Assembly (NCBI GenBank): GCA_000320545.1
Contig: ADNK01003500.1
Coordinates: forward strand, 1-64,000
DNA: 64,000 bases
DNA from: Bigelowiella natans CCMP2755
Taxonomy: Eukaryota; Protista; Cercozoa
Direction of reading: 5' to 3'
Shown here: positions 2,874 through 20,452 of the stretch, one piece after another
Layout of the letters: the number at the start of each line of letters is the position of its first letter
How positions within the stretch are numbered: position 1 is the stretch's first letter
Notes under the pieces: generated by a model
Seen by the model: only the letters and a program-made list of their open reading frames with translations
What the model was told of the DNA's origin: nothing
The model's database searches: none
Made by a program: the position numbers and the translations under genes

Positions 2874-3235
2874 GGATATGAGTCAACGCCGTTTTGCTAC
2901 TATTCGTCCAAACAGTGTCCTTTCTGCTTATTGCTATTGTTGTTCTTCTTCTTCCTCCTCTTCTTTGGTCCTCTACCAATAAGAACTCTCCATCACCACC
3001 ATCATCGTGCGATGAAGATCTTCGTCTTCTTTTCATGTAGTTGTCACACCCTCTCTTTGGATCCCAATTATACACTGCGACAAACCAAAATAATAATTTA
3101 CTGATCAATTGCCATTTAATCCTTTGCGACAAGCATTCTCCTTGTCTCAGTTCTCATACGAGCGTACGAGCTTAAAGAGTGAACCAACGGACGACGTAGA
3201 GACCCCCCCCTAATCCCCCCCTTCGCTCGCCGCTG

Positions 3236-4096
3236 ATGTCAAGGGTAGAATTGAAAGGGTCTAAGGAAGAACGAAGCAAAACCTCAATTGAGGGTATTCC
3301 ACATAATGTTACAAAAATCTCTTTTATAATGCCTGCTGCTGCTTTCGATCAGTAACACATCACCTCTTGTTCCACTTTACCAATCTTCTGTGCGAAGAAG
3401 AAGATCAAGTTGTAATACCCATGGATACGATGCGATACGATATAATACTCCTGCTAAAACACAATCAGTGGAAATATGTTTTCTCCCATTACCCTTTTTT
3501 TCCCCCAACAGGTGACGGGTTCAGCGTTCAAATTCAGCCTGGATGCCTATCGAACCTTGGCTCTAAGATTACTGCGTTGGTGCCTGCTTGCAAGTATGTC
3601 ATCATCTCGGACAGAAATGTTTCCAGTAAACATGCAGATATATTGAAAAAGTCATTCGACGTAGTGAACGCCATAACATGTGTAAAAGCAATACCTCCAG
3701 GAGAGGTCTCGAAGGGACGCAGAACAAAAGAAGAGGTGATGGAACGATGCAGTAGTAAGTAGTAGTAGCTCAGTGCGCCCCCATTATGTAGTTAGATCAC
3801 TGCCAGCCCACTGTGACTTCTTCGTTATGATAGGTGGAAGACTGGATGGCCTCGAACGGATGCAAGAAGGACTGCTGTCTCGTTGCACTGGGTTAGTAAG
3901 TAAATAGCATTAAGATCTACATCATCAACAACAAAACACAAACGCATACTAACTCACATACATCACACATGCATACCAATAAACAAATATATACATATAC
4001 ATTGTTTTTGTATATGTACTCCCAAATGTTCCACCACAACCAACACCACCGAAGATTTTCTGTATGGAAGTAGTTATTATCCTCCCTAAATGCTGG

Positions 4097-4129
<33 letters not shown>

Positions 4130-7100
4130 CGTATAACAAAGGTGGAGGAGTAATCCAGGACCTTGGTGGATTTTTAGCGTCTACATATATGATGGGAATA
4201 CCATTCGTGGGGTAAGAGAAGTCTATTGCTGCTTTAGATCACCCATGCCACATGATGTTATATATTCGAACATCATCGCTTATAAGAACAACTTCAGCCA
4301 CGTCAGAGTAACAATTCTTAATCATTCTCTTGCTCTATCTCCTATTCATTTAATCACAAAGGATTCCAACATCATTGGTGGCAATGCTAGAATGTAGTGT
4401 ACCGAGAGAAGTAGGGATTAATGCATCAGAGAAGAAAAATCTTGTCGGTAGCTTTGTAAGGCCCAGAGCAGTCTTCATAGACATCGAGGTAGCAGTGGTA
4501 GTGGTAGTAATAAGAGAATGAGGAGGAGAAAGGGGACGGTGACGATAAGAGCAATAGTGTGTCGTAGTGATAAGAATTGTGTTCACGGTGGTATACTGAA
4601 AAATACTAGCTGGCATACGTACATTTAATATGCACTTGCTGCTGCTGCAGGTTTTATCAACCCTCTCTTTACGATACCTACGTGATGGTATGGCTTCTGC
4701 AATTCGTTCTGCTGTTCTGTATGATCGAGAATTATTCGCTCTTATCGATGAAAATGCCCACAGTCTCCAGCAGTACGATAAAACAATGCTTACAGCTGTG
4801 CTTTACCGAGCAATTAAAGCAAAGATTAAGATAATGACGGCAAAGTATCATCCTGGCATGAGCAGCACCAGCATCCAAGCATACACGGCTAATTCCAGCA
4901 CGATGAGCACTAATAAAGATGATGATAATGATAAGGATAGGCGACGACAGCAGCAGCAGCAGCAGCAGCAGCAGCAAAAAGACAACGACGCTGATGAGCA
5001 GTTTGGCCATGTAGTGGGGGATGCAATAAAGGAGCTGATGTCTCCGATGCTTTTTGATGGCGAATGCCTTGCAATAGGCCTTGTCGCTGAAATGGAAATC
5101 GCTCAAATCATGGGCTATCTGAAACAGCCATCCGCATGTATAGGGAGAGTGAGAAGGTAACAGATAATATAGTAGTAGTAGTAGTAGTAGTAGTAGCAGT
5201 ATCACAGGTGGTGTTGGCAGGGGGGTGACGTAGGAAATGCTCATCATTATTCCAAAGCACCACACTCACATTATTCATAAGAATGTATAACAATCCTACT
5301 ACTACTACTACTACTGCTGCACAGTTGCTCACAGCTCACCCACATTATTCATAAGAATGTACAACAATGCTACTACTACTACTACTACTACTACTACTGC
5401 TGCACAGTTGCTCACAGCTCACCCACATTATTCATAAGAATGTACAACAATGCTACTACTACTACTACTACAACTACTACTGCTGCACAGTTGCTCACAG
5501 CTCACCCACATTATTCATAAGAATGTATAACAATCCTACTACTACTACTACTACTACTACTACTGCTGCACAGTTGCTCACAGCTCACCCACATTATTCA
5601 TAAGAATGTATAACAATCCTACTACTACTACTACTACTGCTGCACAGTTGCTCACAGCTCACCCACATTATTCATAAGAATGTATAACAATCCTACTACT
5701 ACTACTACTACTGCTGCACAGTTGCTCACAGCTCACCAATAGTATCATATCTAAAAAGAGGATAGTTTTTCACAATCTGCTAACCTCACACAAACCCCCG
5801 CTTTCTCTCTCTCTCTCTCTGTATGTTTATCTTGATACTAACACACAAAATCACTCTAATGTACTACGCAACAACAGATGCCTTCGTAAGTTTTATCTAC
5901 CAACGGATATTCCCTCGGACCTCGAGCCAAAAGACTTGCTGCAAGCCATTCGTAGAAATCAAAGACGACAGCAAGGGGGAGGAGGAGGAGGAGGAGGAGA
6001 TAGTGCTGATGCTGCTGCTGCTACGATAGTAATCGAGGGAAGGGGAGAAGAGAAGCAGAAAGAAGGGCCAACGAAAGGAGTACGAGGGGGAGGAGCCAAT
6101 ACCAAGAGTCCTGCTGTAGCAGCAGCATCTACTACAAAGAGAACTTATCGAGGTAGTAGTAGTAGTAGTAGGATATTGGACAACAGCTAGATTAATTGAT
6201 GATTAGTGATGGTACATGATTACTGACGATAATGGTGATGATGATAATGATGCTTGTCAAAATGATTCTCTTAATTGGATCATCAACATATTCTTCTTTT
6301 ACTGCCATCCTACCTTTATGATTGGTTTCTCCTCCTCCTCCTCCTCCTCCTCCTCCTCCTCCTTATTCTTATCTATTAGTTGCAATGGTCAGCTCAATAG
6401 GGAAGCTGCTTCTCCTACCATCATCATCATCATCATCATCATCCGCAGCAGCATTACCATACTTCTCAAGTGTGGAGGTGAATGAAAGTGTTCTATTAAA
6501 AGTCCTTAATAATAATCAAGACGCCATTGCTGTATCGCCTACGAAGATATCGGGACATATTTCTGTCCCTGGATCTATATCTATATCAACACGTGTGCTC
6601 CTTCTAGCAGCTTTGGGAGAAGGAGAATGTCGTATCAAAGGTTTATTACTTTCAGACTACACAGAAGTTATGATAACAGCACTAAGGAAACTAGGCATCT
6701 CCATAGGTAGTAAGTAATAGAAGTAGTTTTAATACTCAATCATACTAATTCTATCCTATGAATCAAAGTGATGGTGTAGTAGATATATCCTCAACATCAT
6801 CATCATTATCACTTAGAATGGGAGGAAGATATGCAGACGCTTGTCGTACGTGGTTCTGCTGGTAAGCTAAAAAGGCCATCAACCGATTTATACATGGGAA
6901 ATGCGAGTGCAGCCACGCGATTCATTACTACAGTTGTTAACCTAATTGAGGAGGAGGAGGAGGAGGAGATGGGGGAGGAGGGGGGAAGGAGCGACGAGGA
7001 ATCGAAAAGGCAGCAGCTGAAGGCTACAAGGATGACAAATACTGATGAGAAGAAGATGAAGAAGAAGAAGGAGGACAACAACACAAAAATGAGTGGTAGG

Positions 7101-7458
7101 GGTGTATCACCATCATCATCGCCTTTGTTAATATCAACATCGTCATCATCACCACTACCTTCACTACAACCACTTAATGGTGGTGATGGTAGTGGTGTTG
7201 TCATTGCCGGAAATTGCCGAATGCACCAAAGACCTATCAGCGATTTAGTTGATTCACTCAAGCTTAGCGGCTGCGACATTTCATATATTGAGAATGTTGG
7301 AAGCTTGCCTCTGAGAATAAATACTAAAAAACATGGCTGGCAGGGTAATAATATATTGTGATAATAATAACGCTATCGTTATTTATTAAGCATCCATCAT
7401 TTTTGAATGGAATAGCAGTCGAGGCTACTACGGCATACATTCCCTCTGTTCCCAACTA

Positions 7459-7499
<41 letters not shown>

Positions 7500-9108
7500 T
7501 AATCGTTGACAATATCATTCATAGTAGTTCTACAGTCATCCCACTCTTAACATACTATATATATATATATATATATATATATGTCTGTCTGTGTGTATAC
7601 ATAAATTAAGGCGGTGAAATCCAGATGGCAGCAAACGTCAGTAGTCAGTTTGTTTCTTCAATCATGATGAGCTCACCATACGCGAAAAAGGCTGTGACTC
7701 TGACATTGGAAAGCACATTGCCTGTTGTTTCAAGGCAATATATCGAGATTACTTGTAAGCTGATGCGATTATTTGGAGTGGAAGTCAAACAGATCTCCCC
7801 CAATCGTTTTTCAGTGCCATGTTCGGTGTACAAAAATCCCAGCAATGTTACAGTTGAAGGGGATGCAACTGCAGCCTCGTATCACTTAGCAATGGCAGCT
7901 ATTACCGGAGGCACCGTTACTGTCGATAATGTTGGGAGTTTGAGTATGCAGACTGATGCTAAATTCTGCAAGCTCTTGGAGAAGATGGGATGCGAGATAG
8001 AGCAAACAGAGTCATCTACGACAGTGAGAGGACCAGGGTAAGATAGTTAGTTAGTTACTACTTTGTTGTAGAAAGAGAATAGAGGAGACAACAAGTAGTA
8101 ATTTGTTAGTTAGTTTGTTAGTTACAACTTTGTTTTGAAGGAGAATAGAGAAGACAACAAGTAGCAATAGTAGTAGTTGTAGTAGTAGTAAACCTTGAAG
8201 TAGTACATAGTCGTAGTAGCATCAGATACAGGAGAGAGAGAGGAGAGTAGCTGTAGTAGTTGTAAGTAGTAGTAGTAGTACTAGTAGTACACCTTGAAAT
8301 ATTTAGTGTGTACTATATATTCAAAGTACTTTTCTCCTTTCCTCTCCTCCTCCTCCTATTCCTCCTCCTACTCATATGGAAGGTATTCTCTACGAGATTC
8401 TGTCACGGCAGCAGCAAATGATAGCAACAATGATGATGATGATGATGAAGAAGAAGAAGAAGAAGAGAAACGACATCATCATCATCGCCCACAACAACAA
8501 GAGTTGATGGCAATTACAGAACCTGTAGATATGGGTAGCATGACAGACGCATTTATGACCCTTGCAGCTGTCGCAGCATTGGCCAAGGGCTCTACGAGGA
8601 TCACCAACATTAAAAACCAACGGTAGTAGTAGTAAGTGTACTACAAAATAATACGATGTATATGATGATTGATTCATATTACTACAGGTACAAAGACTGC
8701 AATAGGCTTGAGGTGATGGTAGGTCAACTACAATCAATAGGAGTTCCATGCACTGAGCAAGAGGATGGTCTTATCATCCATGGAAATCCATTGCTGAGAA
8801 ACCGTGCAGTTATGGAAACTTCTCTGATCAATCCTCATGAAGATAGCCGTATTGCAATGTCTTTTGCTGTGTTGGCCTGTGGAACTCCTGGGCTTGCTAT
8901 AAAAGGCAAACGGTGTGTTGATGCATCTTATCCGTCTTTCTGGAATGATATTCAAAGAGAGCTCGATGCAAAAGTAGGAGCTGTACTTGATCCAGTATCA
9001 AACAATCATATTCCTCAGGAAGAAGCAACTGTTTGGCTTGTTGGTAATATAAAACACCAACACTTGCAAGCATGCTATATATTATCATCTGCATTCCCAT
9101 TCGCATTT

Positions 9109-9144
<36 letters not shown>

Positions 9145-9171
9145 GGTATTCATCATCCTAGCTCCTAATGT

Positions 9172-9204
<33 letters not shown>

Positions 9205-9986
9205 TTACGTGTTTTCTTCTCTTCTCCCTGATATAATATAATAGGTATGCGAGGAGTTGGCAAGACAACCTTAGGGAAAATGGTTGCGAAAAACCTTGGA
9301 CGACCATTTATTGATCTAGATCACATCTTTGAGATAAGGTGCTGGTGGTGGTTATAGTTATATTTATGCTTCTTCTTCTTCTTCTTTATGATTAGAATAG
9401 TAGATAGAAGGAAGGAACGAAGGAGAAGAAGAAGAAGGAGAAGGAGAGATATCAATCATTTCCTCCTCCTCCTCCTCCTCCTCCTCCTCCTCCTTCTATT
9501 ACTACCACATACACTGAATAGGCACGGAATCAAGATAAGAGCATTCGTTCAGAAGTTTTCGTGGCAAGAATTTCGTGCAAGAGAGCTGGGGTTGTTTGAG
9601 GAGATTATGAAAAGTCACGCAAGAGGATTTGTTATAGCATGTGGTGCCGGTCTCGTTGAAACTCCCGCTGCTATGGAAGCTTTTAAGCGGCTACCTGTTG
9701 TAGTGCAAATAAATCGCCATATTGATGATGTAGCAGCATATCTCAGCAAGGACTCTTCGAGACCTGCCCTTCTCAAAGACGGAAAGTCAGTTGATTCTAC
9801 TAAAGACAGAGAGGAGGAAGGGGAGAAGGAGGAGGAGAAGAGGAAAAATAGAGAGGGGAAGGAAAAGGGGCGGAAGAGAGGAGAAGGAAGAGAAAGAGGA
9901 GGAGTTGGGGATAAATCAATCAAGGAGAAAAGTATTTTTATACACATTAGCTTGTGGGTAATGATTAAATTGAGAATTGTTGGAAG

Positions 9987-10036
<50 letters not shown>

Positions 10037-10104
10037 TTGCGCTCTTTTGCATCTGCATTTATTATTTTCTTACTTACTTTCTTTCTTTTTGTTGATTATT
10101 ATTG

Positions 10105-10139
<35 letters not shown>

Positions 10140-10317
10140 GTAGTTATGCATGGGATTGCCAAGCTATATGGGAGGCTCGGCGTCCATTATACCGTGCAGC
10201 TAGTTCCTACGAGTTTACTATCATCAAAGGGGATTCTGACTGGGCTAAAATACTGGATGATCTCACCAGATTTTTGAATGTACCAGTATAGCATTGATGC
10301 TGCCTTCCCCATTATTC

Positions 10318-10352
<35 letters not shown>

Positions 10353-11177
10353 TAGAAGAAATGATGTTGTAGAAACAGTAGCAGTCGATGATGATTATAT
10401 ATTATTTTCATGATGATATATTATATATATATATATATATATATCGGTGGTCATTCATTCATTCTTCTCCTGAACTGTTTCTTCTTCTTCTTCTTCTTAA
10501 ATTCTGCTGCTAATATTCTACTAATATTTCATCGACTTCATCATCATCTTCATCATCATCATCATTCAGACGGTAACGATGTCGCCAGTCGGTCAAACTG
10601 CATCAGTTTATGAGCATGATATTAAAGATGTTGATGTTGTGAAGCTAGTGGGTGGAACCTTCTTCTTGTCTTTGACATTTAAAAATATGCGAGAAGTCGT
10701 TCCTAAAATGCAAGATCTTGTAGCTGGTACTACTCCTACTACTACTTATTTCTTATTGACAAAGATTCTTACTTACACGATCGAAGAAGAAATAATGATT
10801 CTTTCTTCTTAATTGGTTGAAAATATGAGCATCATACTCTTTTGCCATTATTTTCAAAGGAAACAGTGCGATTGAGTTACGTGTTGACCTATGGGAAAGC
10901 TGGGATTTTGATTTCATCCATGAGCAAATAGCAATCTTTAGGAGACATTGCTGCCTACCCATCGTGTAATATATTAATATTAGTTCAGTGATACAGTGAG
11001 TGAGTGTGTGTGTGTGTGTGTGTGTGTGATTATAATAGTAGTGACGAAGATGTAATGCTTAGCTGATTATAATGACCAATGATGATGATGATGATAATAA
11101 TGCTTAGCTGATTATAATGACCAATGATGATGATGATGATAATAATAATTTAATTTATTCAGCATTTCATTCATGAA

Positions 11178-11224
<47 letters not shown>

Positions 11225-11877
11225 CCTCTACATACCTATCTTCTTTCATCTAGTTACACAATCCGCACGGAGGGTCAGTGTGGTAAATTTCCAAATGACG
11301 AGAAGAAGCTTTTCCGTCTTTACGAGCTTGGAATACGGTGTGGGTGCGAATTCATCGATATGGAACACCACTGGTCAAGAGCAGCACGGCATAAGCTAAT
11401 GCGGCATCGTCGTCATGCTAAGATTATTGCCAGTGCACACTTTAAAAACTCGAATGGTGGTACCGAAGTGGATCTTGAGAATACATTCCAGTTGTGCGCA
11501 CATGGGGTATGAATGTATTATTACGTTTTATTAAACGTAGTACTTATTGTGTGTGTGTGTGCTTGTGTGATCGAAGAAGCACTAAAATTAACATGCATGC
11601 ACATATGGGCTGCAAGGAACATCATTCATTGATTCAAGTGTGCTTGAAAGAAAGAAAGAAAAAAAGAAAGATCGAAAGTGTGGTGTGCCTGCTTACATCG
11701 CCACCGTTCGTTTCATACCATAGTACTGATACAACGATCATACAATTTTTAGGGAAGGGCAGACGTGGTTAAAGTAGTGACGACAGCTTTTTGCCTAGAA
11801 GATGCCATTCGTCTTGTCCATGTTGCCAAAAATGTGCGTCTTCCTGGAAATCCTCCCAAGGTGGTTTGTGTGTGCGT

Positions 11878-11915
<38 letters not shown>

Positions 11916-13406
11916 ACATCGTAGTAGATTCTACATTACTTTGTCGTTGTTTGTTCTCCTCACACAGTAGTAGTAGCAGTTGTAGTAGTTGTAGTAGCAG
12001 AAAAAGGAGGAGGAGGAGGAGGAGGAGGAGTAATCATCTTCTCATGATCTTCTCATCTCATCATCATCACTATCGTCATCGTTGTGTGTGTGTTTCGTCG
12101 TCGGTTTCCTCGCTATCAGATCATTCTGGCAATGGGGGCTGTTGGGCAGATCTCCCGTGTTTTCAACGAATATTTGACTCCTGTAACCCACGCATTAATG
12201 CCTGGCATTGCAGCTCCTGGTCAACTAAGTATTGAGGAAATTGCCACAGCAAGAAAGATGCTGTCGATTCGTGCACCGATGAAACGAGCAATGTATTATT
12301 ATTGTTATTATCATTATTTATCGGAAGAGATCATGATGATGGTGATAGAGATGGTGGTGTTTTTTAAAGAACATGATATTTAACTCGTTCTAAAGAACAT
12401 GATATTAACTCAATATTTTGAAGGAAGCGGTGCACTCAGCGACAGTATATATAATTGTGAATAATTCTATTTCAGGTATATCATTGGACAAAATATACAA
12501 ATGTCTCTCGCACCATTGTTATTCAACACAGCATTCAAATATCTTCATTTTGAACATGAAGCTAAGATTTTCGAGACAAAAGATGCGTCATTGGACTCCA
12601 TCCTAAAGCTATTCAAGTCCCCTGGATTTGGTGGTGCTTGCATCTCAGCGCCATTCAAAACGGAAATACTTCCTTTGCTAACAGATATGTCGAAATGTGC
12701 AAGAGAGATAGGAGCAGTGAATTCTGTGGCGGTATTAAAAGGAGAGGAGAAGGATGGAGGAGGAGGGAGAAGGAGGATGATTGGAGGGGGTTTATACGGA
12801 CATAATACTGACTGGTCTAGTTTTTACAAGAAGCTGATGACAGAGCGTGTGGCAACACATGGTGCAATGGCAATTGTCGTTGGTAGCTGTGGTACTGCAC
12901 GTGCTGCCTGTTATGCGCTTCTTACCTATGGTTACACTCATGGAAGTGTTGTAGTATATGATCCAATAAACCACAAACGGGCAGAAGAAGTCGCCAACCA
13001 TTTCAAATGTGAGGCTAGGAAAAAACTCGAGAATATGCGCAATGTGAACGTTATCATCGCATCGTTCCGCAAGTTTGGGCCAAAGCAGATGGAGGATTTT
13101 ATCATACCACAACCTGTTATTCAACAAGGCCCCCTTGTCATTGATTCCAGATATTTTCCTTTGCACACACGGCTAGAAGATCAAGCTGCTGTATATGGTT
13201 GTAATACCTTACGTGGCCTTGACCTTCTTATCCTGCAGAGTATTGAACAATTGAAACTATGGGTTGGTGTAAAACATTGGGCTATGGTGGAATCTGCTGC
13301 ACCGGTCATTGATAGAGCAGTTCGCCACTTATTCTACGAAAAATTTGTTAAGAATTCAGCGAAGGGAGATAGCAGTGATTATAGCAAGAAGCAGTTGCTG
13401 CAATAA
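3236..13406 (+). CDS. ARO1: Pentafunctional AROM polypeptide (DHQS-EPSPS-SK-DHQase I-SDH), multi-exon; two N-terminal domains catalytically degenerate
   Basis: ATG at 3236; exon 1 3236-3293 splices in frame to exon 2 at 3512. Canonical AROM domain order: [16 protein letters not shown]; [17 protein letters not shown] / VSSQF / [10 protein letters not shown]; GMRGVGKTT; IELRVD / APGQL; AVNSV / HNTDW. Stop at 13404-13406. Confidence 0.95.
3512..6480 (+). other. AROM domain 1: 3-dehydroquinate synthase fold (degenerate)
   Basis: [86 protein letters not shown]. Confidence 0.9.
5267..5737 (+). repeat. Intronic minisatellite, 6 copies of a 74-83 bp unit with an internal variable (TAC)n tract
   Basis: Unit cacattattcataagaatgtayaacaatsc-(tac)n-tgctgcacagttgctcacagctcacc starts at 5267, 5341, 5424, 5507, 5590 and 5664. 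Confidence 0.95.
6520..8975 (+). other. AROM domain 2: EPSP synthase fold (degenerate)
   Basis: [85 protein letters not shown]. Confidence 0.92.
9030..10275 (+). other. AROM domain 3: shikimate kinase
   Basis: Walker [10 protein letters not shown] (exon from 9245), [24 protein letters not shown] lid, ARRPLY. Confidence 0.9.
10640..12270 (+). other. AROM domain 4: type I 3-dehydroquinate dehydratase
   Basis: [29 protein letters not shown] (catalytic His), DVVKVV (Schiff-base Lys), [15 protein letters not shown]. Confidence 0.9.
12477..13406 (+). other. AROM domain 5: shikimate dehydrogenase
   Basis: [17 protein letters not shown] (catalytic Lys), GAVNSV, GHNTDW (catalytic Asp), [23 protein letters not shown]. 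Confidence 0.88.
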
Positions 13407-17420: not shown

Positions 17421-20400
17421 ATGAGCCAACGAGGCGGGGGCGGACAAAAGGATGTCAAGAGTGTTTTCGCTCACGTTTTTGGTCTGGGAGATTTAACCTA
17501 CCATCCAAACGGAAGGTGAGACCACGTTGCTACACATTCATGAAAATTTATGATGAAGTATTGTAATTTCGTAGAGAGATCTTCACCTGTGGCGCGGACG
17601 CGGCTATCCGAATATTTCCTCACGATGATATTGATGCTAAGCCAAAAGAGATTACCTATCACAAAGGCGGAGTAACCTGCATCACCTTCAACTCTCAGGG
17701 AGACTGCTTCGCTGCAGGCGACGAGGAACATGTTGTGGCGCTGTACACCTATCCAGATTGCAAATTTGATCAAGTCGCTACCCGCTGCACAACTGCAATT
17801 ACGCATTTAACTTTCAGTCCCTCTGGAAACCTTCTAGCTGTGGCTGAACAGTAATTTACTTACTTCCTCGAGACTAAATCATTATCTTCTTATTAACAAA
17901 TATAATCTTATCAGGGACACAAATATAAAACTCGTCAGTGTGTTGAATACGCAGCACGTCACCCTACTAAAAGGCCATACAGGTCCCATAAGAAGGTGAG
18001 ATAGCCTGTGTAATTGTCAATAACATTTTTTTTGACAATTGCTGTCAAATATACCAATGATTCTAACTGTACTACAGTCTTGCATTTGACCCACTGAATG
18101 AATACCTGGCTTCCTCGGCTGGAGATGGCACTCTTCGAGTTTGGAAGATTCGTGATAAATCCACCGTAATCGCTATTCCATGCTTCCCAACAACGAGTGC
18201 GGACAGCTTGCAGCTTCTTAGAATGTGCTGGAGTCCGGAGGGCGGCCAATTGGTAACAACATGCTAATGTTACGAGATTTGACTAGATATTTAGATTTGT
18301 ATTGGGTAGGTGGGTAGGATGCTGATGTCTGTTTTTTACATCTATGCTAGCCAGAGATCGAAGAAGTTAATTATTTTCTCCTTAGGCTATACCTGGCGAC
18401 AAATCTGTGAAAATCTTGAATAGAAATGAATGGAGAGGAGACGCAGGATTTCCGGGGCATTCAGCAAATACAACCATAGCCTCCTTTAGTCCTAATGGAA
18501 AGTATATTGCGACCACTGGTGAAGATAATAAAGTGAACGTTTACGATTGTAAAAAGTCGGAGCTCATTGGCTACATTCAGATCGATACTCAATGCACAGG
18601 TACTTTGTAGAAGTGGTCATTCTATTTTTCCCAACATATCATTGACAAGCAATAAATTAATAAGGTCTCAGCTGGGCAACCAAGAGCAACACTTTGGTTG
18701 TACTTGAGAGATTTGGTAACATGAAGCAATGGAATAATCCTGTCCCAGAGCACATGCCCAAACCCTATGATGAGGTGGTAGTGAATGCAAAGGGTGAATC
18801 ATCCCTCAACGATAATCAGATAGAAGAGAAAAAATCCAGCACTGAAGAGAAAGAAGGCCAAAATTTTCCTAAACTTAAATCACTCGACGAAAACGATGAC
18901 GACGATGACGACGATGACGACGATGAGGATGACAATAAGAGGTTCCCAATTTCAATGACGATGTAAGCATTTGAGATTCATATTATTTTTCCTACTACCG
19001 TGTATGTTTTACAGCACTGGCAGCGGTTCCCCAGGACAGAAAAAGAAAAGGAAAAGATTAAGAAGAATTGCAGACGACGACGAGGACGAAGAAGATTCCA
19101 AAAAAGCTGCGAAGCGGTCATCTTTTGGCAGCCCATCTAGCGACAACGAGGAGAACAGTAACCCTGAGACTCCAGTGAATACCAAATTCCAAGCTGCACA
19201 CAACTCTTCATATTTAACTCCTTCGCAACCATCATTCCAGCCAAGTGCCACTCCTCTTGGTTTGCAGCGTCGATATTTGGCCTGGAATGCCATCGGAATC
19301 ATAGTTTCTCGTCAGGAACACACGCATTCTGCTATTCAAATTGATTTTCATGATGCTCAACTTCATAGATCCGTACGCTTTCTGGATCGATACAATTACG
19401 TGGTTGCTGCACTGAGCTCCACAGCAGCAATTTTTGCCTCTAGTAACAATGAGAGCGGCCCAAGCACCATATTTTATAAACCATTTGAAACCTGGGGAAA
19501 TAAAAGTGAATGGTTGTTCCAGCTCGAAGACGACGAGGAAGTAAAGTGTTGCGCTATTGGAAAGCGATGGGCTGCCGTTGGCACAAGTGAGAATTTCTTG
19601 CGAATCTTTTCCTACAGCGGTCTCCAAATTGGAGCGAAATCCCTCCCTGGACCAGTCGTAGCAATGACTGGCAACGATGATCACCTTGCTGTAGTTTTCT
19701 CCGTCTACGGGGCTTTGCAGTACTGGCTCTTGGATGTCTCAAAAGACAAATTTATCTCTCAAGGTATGCTACCAATTTCCCCTGGATCTACTCTATCGTG
19801 GCTTGGATTTACGTGGAATTTAAACAATCTAGCTACGTTTGACAGCAAAGGAGTACTTCGTATGCTAGTATCAAAAGATTTTTCCTGGATACCAATTCTC
19901 AATGCAAAGAAACATTGTAAGGGTAGGAAGGATACTGTCTGGCCAATTTACACAACTTCTGAAAATCTAATGTGCCATATCTGCAAAGGGGGTAAAAATT
20001 TCCCCCAGACACTACCTCGTCCTATTCCCCAAGCATTACCTATATGTGTGCCTATTCTTGGGCTGGCCTCAAGTGAGAGTGAAAAACTTCAGGAAAAATA
20101 CTTGCGTCAAAAAATGATTCTTGAAGAACACGCCAAGCAAGGAATGCCAATGACTCCGAAGGACAAGATCAAGCTTGATAAACTAATACTAATGAACATT
20201 AGACTTGCTTGCAAGGGAGGCCGATCGGTGCGCGCACTGGATCTGAGTACACGTCTAAATCGCAAAAAGTCCCTCGACACCGCAATTCTGATGGCGAATC
20301 GTATGAATCAAACTCAACTTGTTGAACGCATGTCGATTATCATGCAGGGAAGAGAAGCTATATCACGCGCTGCAACGACCCAACGACCAGCTTCGACTTT

Positions 20401-20452
20401 CATTGGTGACAAAGGAACAAAATCTGCGAAAGCTCAGCAGAGGACTTCGTAG
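17421..20452 (+). CDS. WDHD1: WD40 + SepB-domain replisome hub Ctf4/AND-1/Mcl1
   Basis: N-terminal WD40 exons (IFTCGADAAIRIF, ITHLTFSPSGNLLAV, FDPLNEYLASSAGDGTLRVW) followed by SepB motifs FQPSATP, RRYLAWNAIGII, LSWLGFT..NLATFDSKGVLR, WIPIL, VWPI, RALDL. Confidence 0.93.

Follow-up and report, generated by a model that had tools for sequence, protein, structure and literature searches.

The 64,000-nucleotide stretch of the Bigelowiella natans CCMP2755 genome analysed here (GenBank contig ADNK01003500.1, positions 1 to 64,000; contig C237 in the 91.4 Mb assembly that we searched; hereafter the window) contains on its forward strand, at 3236..13406, a gene for a five-domain AROM protein of the shikimate pathway. 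The 3-dehydroquinate synthase (DHQS) and 5-enolpyruvylshikimate-3-phosphate synthase (EPSPS) domains of this protein have lost catalytic residues, the shikimate kinase (SK) and type I dehydroquinase (DHQase) domains keep theirs, and the shikimate dehydrogenase (SDH) domain is remodelled. By architecture and descent the protein is an AROM; judged by its active sites, it is not pentafunctional. The explanation that we favour, and to which we give close to an even chance, is that after duplication and fission the old AROM serves as the cytosolic DHQase, probably together with SK, and that its dead domains act as a scaffold and metabolite sensor, i.e. that it is a ligand-gated DHQase.

The active sites were surveyed by aligning the B. 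natans protein and three orthologs with 32 canonical AROMs, with residue numbering anchored on PDB alignments. The orthologs are a protein of Amorphochlora amoebiformis (GAB5361551.1; P0002), P0161 on a JGI contig of transcript size, and P0162, which is intronless and encoded on a compact marine metagenome contig. Each DHQS and EPSPS site listed here as changed in B. natans is canonical in 31-32 of the 32 reference AROMs. The pseudo-DHQS domain (aa 20-484; 3236..6513, + strand) was delimited by PDB alignments, residue comparison and predicted fold, and it carries the changes G118>Q, R130>M, D146>E, K152>E, E194>S, K197>R, N268>Q, H275>D, and H287>D. Two of the three Zn ligands, E194 (codon 4696) and H287 (codon 5056), are thus replaced, as are the catalytic H275 (codon 5020), R130, K152, and N268, and most catalytic residues are lost. 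E194, H275, H287, N268, K197, and G118 are replaced in all four orthologs, which leaves the AROM set of Zn-ligand and catalytic residues incomplete; H271 is retained in B. natans only. In Candida albicans Aro1, DHQS activity is undetectable in a double mutant at the positions equivalent to H275 and H287 (PMC9074039). Against TIGR01357 (cut-off, 305 bits), the dead domains score 161-177 bits and the foraminiferan AROM 370. AlphaFold models keep a DHQS-type fold, although these predictions are weak evidence because the input alignments are rich in canonical homologs. In the DHQS tree, the dead domain could not be placed owing to long branches.

The pseudo-EPSPS domain (aa 485-1045; 6514..8982, + strand; PDB alignments and residue comparison) differs from canonical AROMs by K22>I (codon 6577), D49>Y, G96>S (6906), T97>A, E341>D (8695), H385>S (8845), and K411>A (8923). 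None of the four orthologs has the canonical residue at D49, G96, or K411, three of them deviate at E341 and H385, and K22 is changed in B. natans alone; the set of phosphoenolpyruvate (PEP)-binding and catalytic residues of an AROM EPSPS is thus incomplete. On the shikimate-3-phosphate (S3P) side, B. natans retains S23, R27, S169, S170, Q171, S197, Y200, D313, N336, and K340, all of which are invariant among the four orthologs except K340, which is Arg in one of them. Using site classes of our own, based on E. coli structures, changes affect one of eight S3P-only sites vs 8 of 11 PEP-only sites (Fisher p=0.02, post hoc). The dead domain still clears the aroA HMM cut-off, and because of this, automatic annotation labels it as active, which makes the curated cut-off an annotation trap.

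The fixation of G96S in all four orthologs could be read as the mark of an EPSP hydrolase that splits EPSP into S3P and pyruvate and would brake or reverse pathway flow. Such an activity was reported for the E. coli G96S mutant, according to the account of Padgette 1991 (PMID 1939260) in the review PMC6695815, and D313, R344, and R386 are retained. A selected catalytic activity should, however, retain its acid, and the E341 position reads D, E, D, and G across the four orthologs; moreover, K411 and D49 are lost in all of them and K22 in B. natans. We regard this explanation as highly improbable.

The SK domain (aa 1058-1232; 9019..10575, + strand; Pfam and ortholog alignment) retains the P-loop, D34, R58, E61, R117, and R136; the single change among the listed sites, G80>A, and a short insertion in the LID are common to the four orthologs. 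In the type I DHQase domain (aa 1258-1490; 10651..12275, + strand; residue comparison and alignment to 6HQV), all nine sites are kept, including the catalytic His (codon 11438, aligned with C. thermophilum H1179 in 6HQV) and Lys (codon 11771). Both domains thus have the catalytic residues of an AROM, and the contention of an earlier sequence-only reading of this DNA that active-site residues are selectively replaced in DHQS and EPSPS and kept in SK and DHQase was borne out by the alignment. That reading overlooked that DHQase is the most constrained domain. Its mean identity among the orthologs is 85%, and the tree lengths of the four orthologs relative to an oomycete AROM quartet are 3.21 for DHQS, 1.43 for EPSPS, 0.96 for SDH, 0.53 for SK, and 0.22 for DHQase, i.e. 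the DHQase domain has evolved ~4.5x more slowly than that of oomycetes. Of the 119 DHQase columns that are variable in canonical AROMs, the four orthologs share one and the same residue at 78, the oomycetes at 17.

This extreme conservation of normally variable columns, together with new insertions, the C-terminal tail, and substrate sites retained in four domains, would also suit a QutR-like transducer, in which the protein would chiefly sense a number of shikimate-pathway intermediates and bind a partner protein through its near-invariant DHQase domain, catalysis being incidental. The fungal repressor QutR, which binds and inhibits a transcription activator, is derived from the three C-terminal AROM domains. 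We consider such a role distinctly unlikely: the nine catalytic sites of DHQase are all intact, as are nearly all of those in SK, another cytosolic DHQase was not found in the genome searches described below, and neither a DNA-binding domain nor a partner was identified.

The SDH domain (aa 1494-1786; 12285..13346, + strand; PDB and ortholog alignments) carries S16>A, T61>S (12645), G128>C, and N149>D (12960) in B. natans and retains K65, N86, D102, and Q244. All four orthologs have Ala or Thr at S16, Ser at T61, and Asp at the NADP-selecting N149, with the K65/D102 dyad kept, and three of them have Cys or Leu in place of G128 in the nucleotide loop. The signature of an NADP-type SDH (S16, T61, GxGG loop, and N-R-T) is thus absent, and a further fragment, P0005, likewise has Asp in place of the Asn of the NRT motif. 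The C-terminal tail is lineage-specific and invariant. The suggestion that three C-terminal domains are usable agrees with the residues of SK and DHQase, whereas SDH, the remodelling of which had been missed, is not plainly usable as an NADPH-dependent shikimate dehydrogenase.

Plant NAD-dependent quinate dehydrogenases are marked by changes at the positions altered here, T381, S338, and the NRT motif (PMC7752791, PMC6797610), where the B. natans protein also has an Asp motif. This raises the prospect of an oxidative salvage module, in which an NAD+-dependent quinate/shikimate dehydrogenase, DHQase, and SK would supply the pathway with quinate or shikimate taken from prey or the medium, on an inert N-terminal scaffold. 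The retained dyad, the long stem (1.07) and short tips of the SDH tree, which fit neofunctionalisation, and the presence of a canonical SDH elsewhere in the genome agree with such a role. The new residues are, however, Ser and Ala/Thr rather than the Gly that switches the plant enzymes, S338A impairs the Arabidopsis enzyme, and the Cys or Leu in the nucleotide loop also speaks against it. Searches for a dehydroshikimate dehydratase and an intradiol dioxygenase came back empty, as weak negatives given their low sensitivity, and the kept S3P site would be left unexplained. The earlier proposal of a quinate/shikimate salvage enzyme therefore draws some support from the SDH residues and none from downstream enzymes, and we hold it to be rather unlikely.

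The gene was modelled as 21 exons encoding 1805 aa on the basis of our own exon model, RNA contigs, and the transcript-derived protein P0001 (MMETSP); JGI Bigna1/91935 falls in the same protein cluster as the C-terminal exon. The exons lie at 3236-3293, 3512-3735, 3834-3891, 4142-4211, 4362-4488, 4651-5156, and 5878-6152 (exons 1-7), 6380-6706, 6817-7344, 7611-8037, 8383-8622, 8688-9043, 9245-9338, and 9522-9785 (exons 8-14), and 10144-10279, 10570-10726, 10860-10965, 11254-11506, 11753-11860, 12120-12292, and 12476-13406 (exons 15-21). All introns are GT..AG, there are no internal stops, and the stop codon ends at 13406. Pfam hits to single exons follow the order DHQS, EPSPS, SK, DHQase I, and SDH on one polypeptide, as in any AROM. 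The RNA contig comparison spans window positions 3130-9110, where spliced contigs and genome show 0 letter differences. Contigs from three studies give the joints of introns 1, 2, 4, 5, 8, and 11, and introns 9, 10, and 12 follow from adjoining contig pieces or loose ends, so that nine of the first twelve introns are supported directly; introns 3, 6, and 7 are based on contig-span arithmetic and homology. The RNA status of datasets X1, X2, and X9 is a guessed label, but the spliced joints bear it out. In the raw RNA run X21, all 11 reads fell within repeats. P0001 is identical to the model over aa 600-884 and 891-1805, the sole difference being an acidic repeat, and because this identity spans them, the remaining 3' junctions are also covered. 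The exons can therefore be joined without stop or frameshift in an intact five-domain frame, as the sequence-only reading had it; only the extent of exon 1, which ends at 3293, had to be corrected. The JGI model P0151 omits aa 440-462 and 1022-1036, and the latter gap deletes the K411 position, which is present in P0001. In intron 6 (5157..5877), a unit of ~60-70 bp recurs several times in tandem, an ordinary intronic repeat.

Contigs from two studies start at 3167, defining a 5' untranslated leader at 3167..3235 (+ strand). An in-frame stop lies 13 codons upstream of the ATG and thus leaves no room for an N-terminal targeting extension, and the N-terminus has no signal-like stretch. Because of these three features, the protein is most likely cytosolic.

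In the SK+DHQase tree, the orthologs nest with the AROM of the foraminiferan Nonionella and further relatives (support 97/96); this tree and the EPSPS tree mentioned below show descent from eukaryotic AROM genes. Because of this position and of the long stem and short tips of the SDH tree, the gene is regarded as host-derived, remodelled once, and conserved thereafter. Synonymous sites are saturated in comparisons with the window, and dN/dS was thus calculated from the P0161-P0162 pair only: 0.25 for DHQS, 0.24 for EPSPS, 0.21 for SK, and 0.08 for DHQase. A decaying pseudogene or an assembly artefact, which the long low-complexity insertions and the fast-evolving DHQS might bring to mind, is refuted by spliced RNA that matches the genome, by reading frames open across four lineages whose synonymous sites are saturated, and by dN/dS far below 1 even in the dead domains, and is hardly conceivable. 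The earlier view of a repurposed protein rather than a decaying pseudogene is upheld on the same grounds. The earliest-branching ortholog (L036/L050) lies on a compact, intron-poor, GC-rich marine contig, and we speculate that its source could be a small relative lacking a plastid. A metagenome scan with a DHQase profile yielded no confirmed relative, and further protein searches added no named orthologs.

Fold-level purifying selection could alone yield dN/dS near 0.25, as would be expected under a structural ratchet, in which the protein is a plain cytosolic DHQase (and SK), whereas the dead domains have no ligand and persist only because the C-terminal domains require them for folding or dimerisation. 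AROM dimers are held through DHQS and DHQase contacts (PMC9074039), and the DHQS domain evolves three times faster than in oomycetes. Against a purely structural role speak the retention of all S3P-side residues while the PEP side of EPSPS is lost and new residues that are identical across the four orthologs (G96S, G118Q, K197R, G80A, T61S, and N149D); in addition, from C. albicans Aro1 an SK-DHQase-SDH fragment has been crystallised by itself and forms dimers. We consider the ratchet unlikely.

A second full AROM was sought across the assembly and not found. A stand-alone AROM-type DHQS on C3696 (370 aa) has all 14 canonical sites and no visible leader, an upstream exon being possible; in a tree without bacterial sequences it groups with a marine AROM, which does not establish an origin by fission. 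A stand-alone EPSPS on C2605/C2606 is leaderless and canonical at every readable site, including K22, D49, G96, E341, H385, and K411, and is sister to the four dead EPSPS domains with support 98/94. AROM-type SK and SDH genes are present on C2575 and C2264, respectively, both with canonical active sites, and the SDH has an ortholog in Amorphochlora. [quoted passage not shown] Leaders of a signal-plus-transit-like kind mark a second set, made up of EPSPS (C1769), SK (C3337), DHQase I (C1029), and chorismate synthase (C3503). The sequence-only reading envisaged complementation by a second AROM or a plastid pathway; complementation by other genes is supported, but in place of the former there are stand-alone host-type genes, and for the latter a partial plastid-type set was found. 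The genome searches gave no type II DHQase and no stand-alone host-type DHQase, a soft negative because intron-rich genes can escape. Because only two DHQase genes were found, i.e. the window AROM and the leader-bearing C1029, DHQase seems to be the one step of the putative cytosolic pathway that still relies on the old polypeptide, whereas the other four AROM steps have their own gene, a point also overlooked previously.

Several other loci were recorded in these searches. The N-terminus of the stand-alone SDH is short and mildly hydrophobic, followed by basic residues, in three species (L033 5700-1640 (-), L032 5850-4540 (-), P0008, and P0009); the stand-alone SK may carry a similar upstream exon, and both could be membrane anchors. 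At L063 3832-4830 (+) (C1873) there is a divergent SDH-like gene, the nucleotide loop of which is unusual, and at L064 near 6030-6240 (-) (C586) a second, partial and apparently broken SDH-like copy. Of the four DAHP synthase loci C3322, C247, C2666, and C3598 (L053-L056), three are of class II and one is a class I tandem, made up of either two genes or a doubled domain. A DHQS-family gene on C567 (L006 577-2900, +) was rejected as DHQS: by eye it looks like an EEVS/DDGS-type sugar phosphate cyclase, its N-terminus carries a long extension, and it offers a lead for mycosporine or gadusol synthesis.

Under the ligand-gated DHQase explanation, the host-derived AROM would have been duplicated and one copy split into stand-alone enzymes to which the DHQS, EPSPS, SK, and SDH reactions have passed. 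The parent, still with five domains, would have been kept as the only leaderless dehydroquinase found; it would turn DHQ into 3-dehydroshikimate, and its SK probably works as well. DHQS would have become a non-catalytic dimer scaffold, EPSPS a module that can still close on S3P or EPSP but is unable to use PEP and without turnover, and SDH would have shifted its preference to NAD(H). As a whole, the protein would then most likely provide a DHQase step allosterically gated by downstream intermediates. Several points weigh against this explanation. The S3P-vs-PEP test is post hoc and modest, and in any case the four orthologs all keep 93 of the 144 EPSPS columns that are invariant in canonical AROMs. 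D313 and K340 of the daughter EPSPS lie in a contig gap. This gene was missed by Pfam and recovered by a custom profile only, and a third DHQase could hide likewise. The daughter genes were checked in B. natans only, except for SDH (Amorphochlora), and cellular locations rest on the N-terminal sequence. Intron positions compared by eye are mostly unshared between parent and daughters, with one shared in DHQS, and lend no support to a parent-daughter origin. In addition, the status of sole DHQase accounts for why the protein was retained; alone, it does not explain why variable columns are conserved to such an extreme degree (78/119 vs 17). A lineage-wide version, in which a whole algal lineage, that of the chlorarachniophytes, reduced AROM to one working gate (DHQase with SK) amid pseudoenzyme sensors of S3P/EPSP and of the NAD(H) state, with the other activities exported to fission daughters, is offered more tentatively, as a possibility short of likely.

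If true, this would represent a built-in mid-pathway feedback point, of a kind that we found undescribed for the shikimate pathway. No description of a gutted AROM was found in the literature covered, which excludes most subscription journals. The case touches on the questions of why AROM domains remain fused although fusion gives no channelling (PMC9074039) and of how enzymes turn into pseudoenzyme sensors. With parent and daughters in one genome, a side-by-side assay of every dead domain and its working counterpart is possible.

Elsewhere in the window, a TTI1-like gene (PF24173; 1-2873, - strand) lies head to head with the AROM gene, with ~360 bp between the putative start codons, and a Ctf4/Mcl1 (WDHD1) homolog at 18971-20452 (+ strand) is an ordinary neighbour. 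Unrelated protist proteins (P0003, P0004, P0006, and P0007) combine SK, a DHQase-like middle, and two tandem SDH domains; the middle looks degenerate in P0003, P0004, and P0006, and one cluster includes Mucochytrium and another the diatom Attheya. These are another independent remodelling of AROM-like C-termini.

The B. natans protein shares the five domains and their order with canonical pentafunctional AROMs (A. nidulans AroM, C. thermophilum 6HQV, and those of oomycetes and foraminiferans) and differs from them in lacking the DHQS and EPSPS catalytic residues, in its remodelled SDH, and in a reversed order of domain conservation. With QutR/qa-1S it shares an AROM origin, lost activities, and a likely sensing role, and it may work partly like QutR. 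QutR, however, has three C-terminal domains only and no catalysis, whereas the present protein has five domains and a DHQase domain with all nine sites, including the catalytic His and Lys; the analogy with QutR and QutA drawn in the sequence-only reading is thus one of resemblance only. The fungal QutR/qa-1S genes are discussed in PMC12610400. Plant NAD-dependent quinate dehydrogenases, which arose from DQD/SDH (PMC7752791), show changes at the same T381, S338, and NRT positions, and the Asp for Asn of NRT is common to all four orthologs. Unlike the plant enzymes, which have Gly at 381 and 338 and lose DQD activity, the AROM has Ser, Ala/Thr, and Asp-Pro and would keep DQD, and its origin is independent. 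The Gly96-to-Ser change of the E. coli EPSPS mutant, as recounted in PMC6695815, is naturally fixed in four lineages here, accompanied by loss of K411 and D49 and a variable E341. Like the B. natans protein, C. albicans Aro1 (PMC9074039) is a full-length AROM with a catalytically dead domain for which a stand-alone enzyme (Dqd1) compensates. In Aro1, however, only DHQase is dead, dispensable and replaced by the unrelated type II Dqd1; the B. natans AROM is its mirror image, with DHQase as the conserved core, two domains dead, AROM-type replacements and, at least for EPSPS, a replacement that is a duplicate of the same gene. Aro1 is the closest tested precedent, and the B. natans case goes further.

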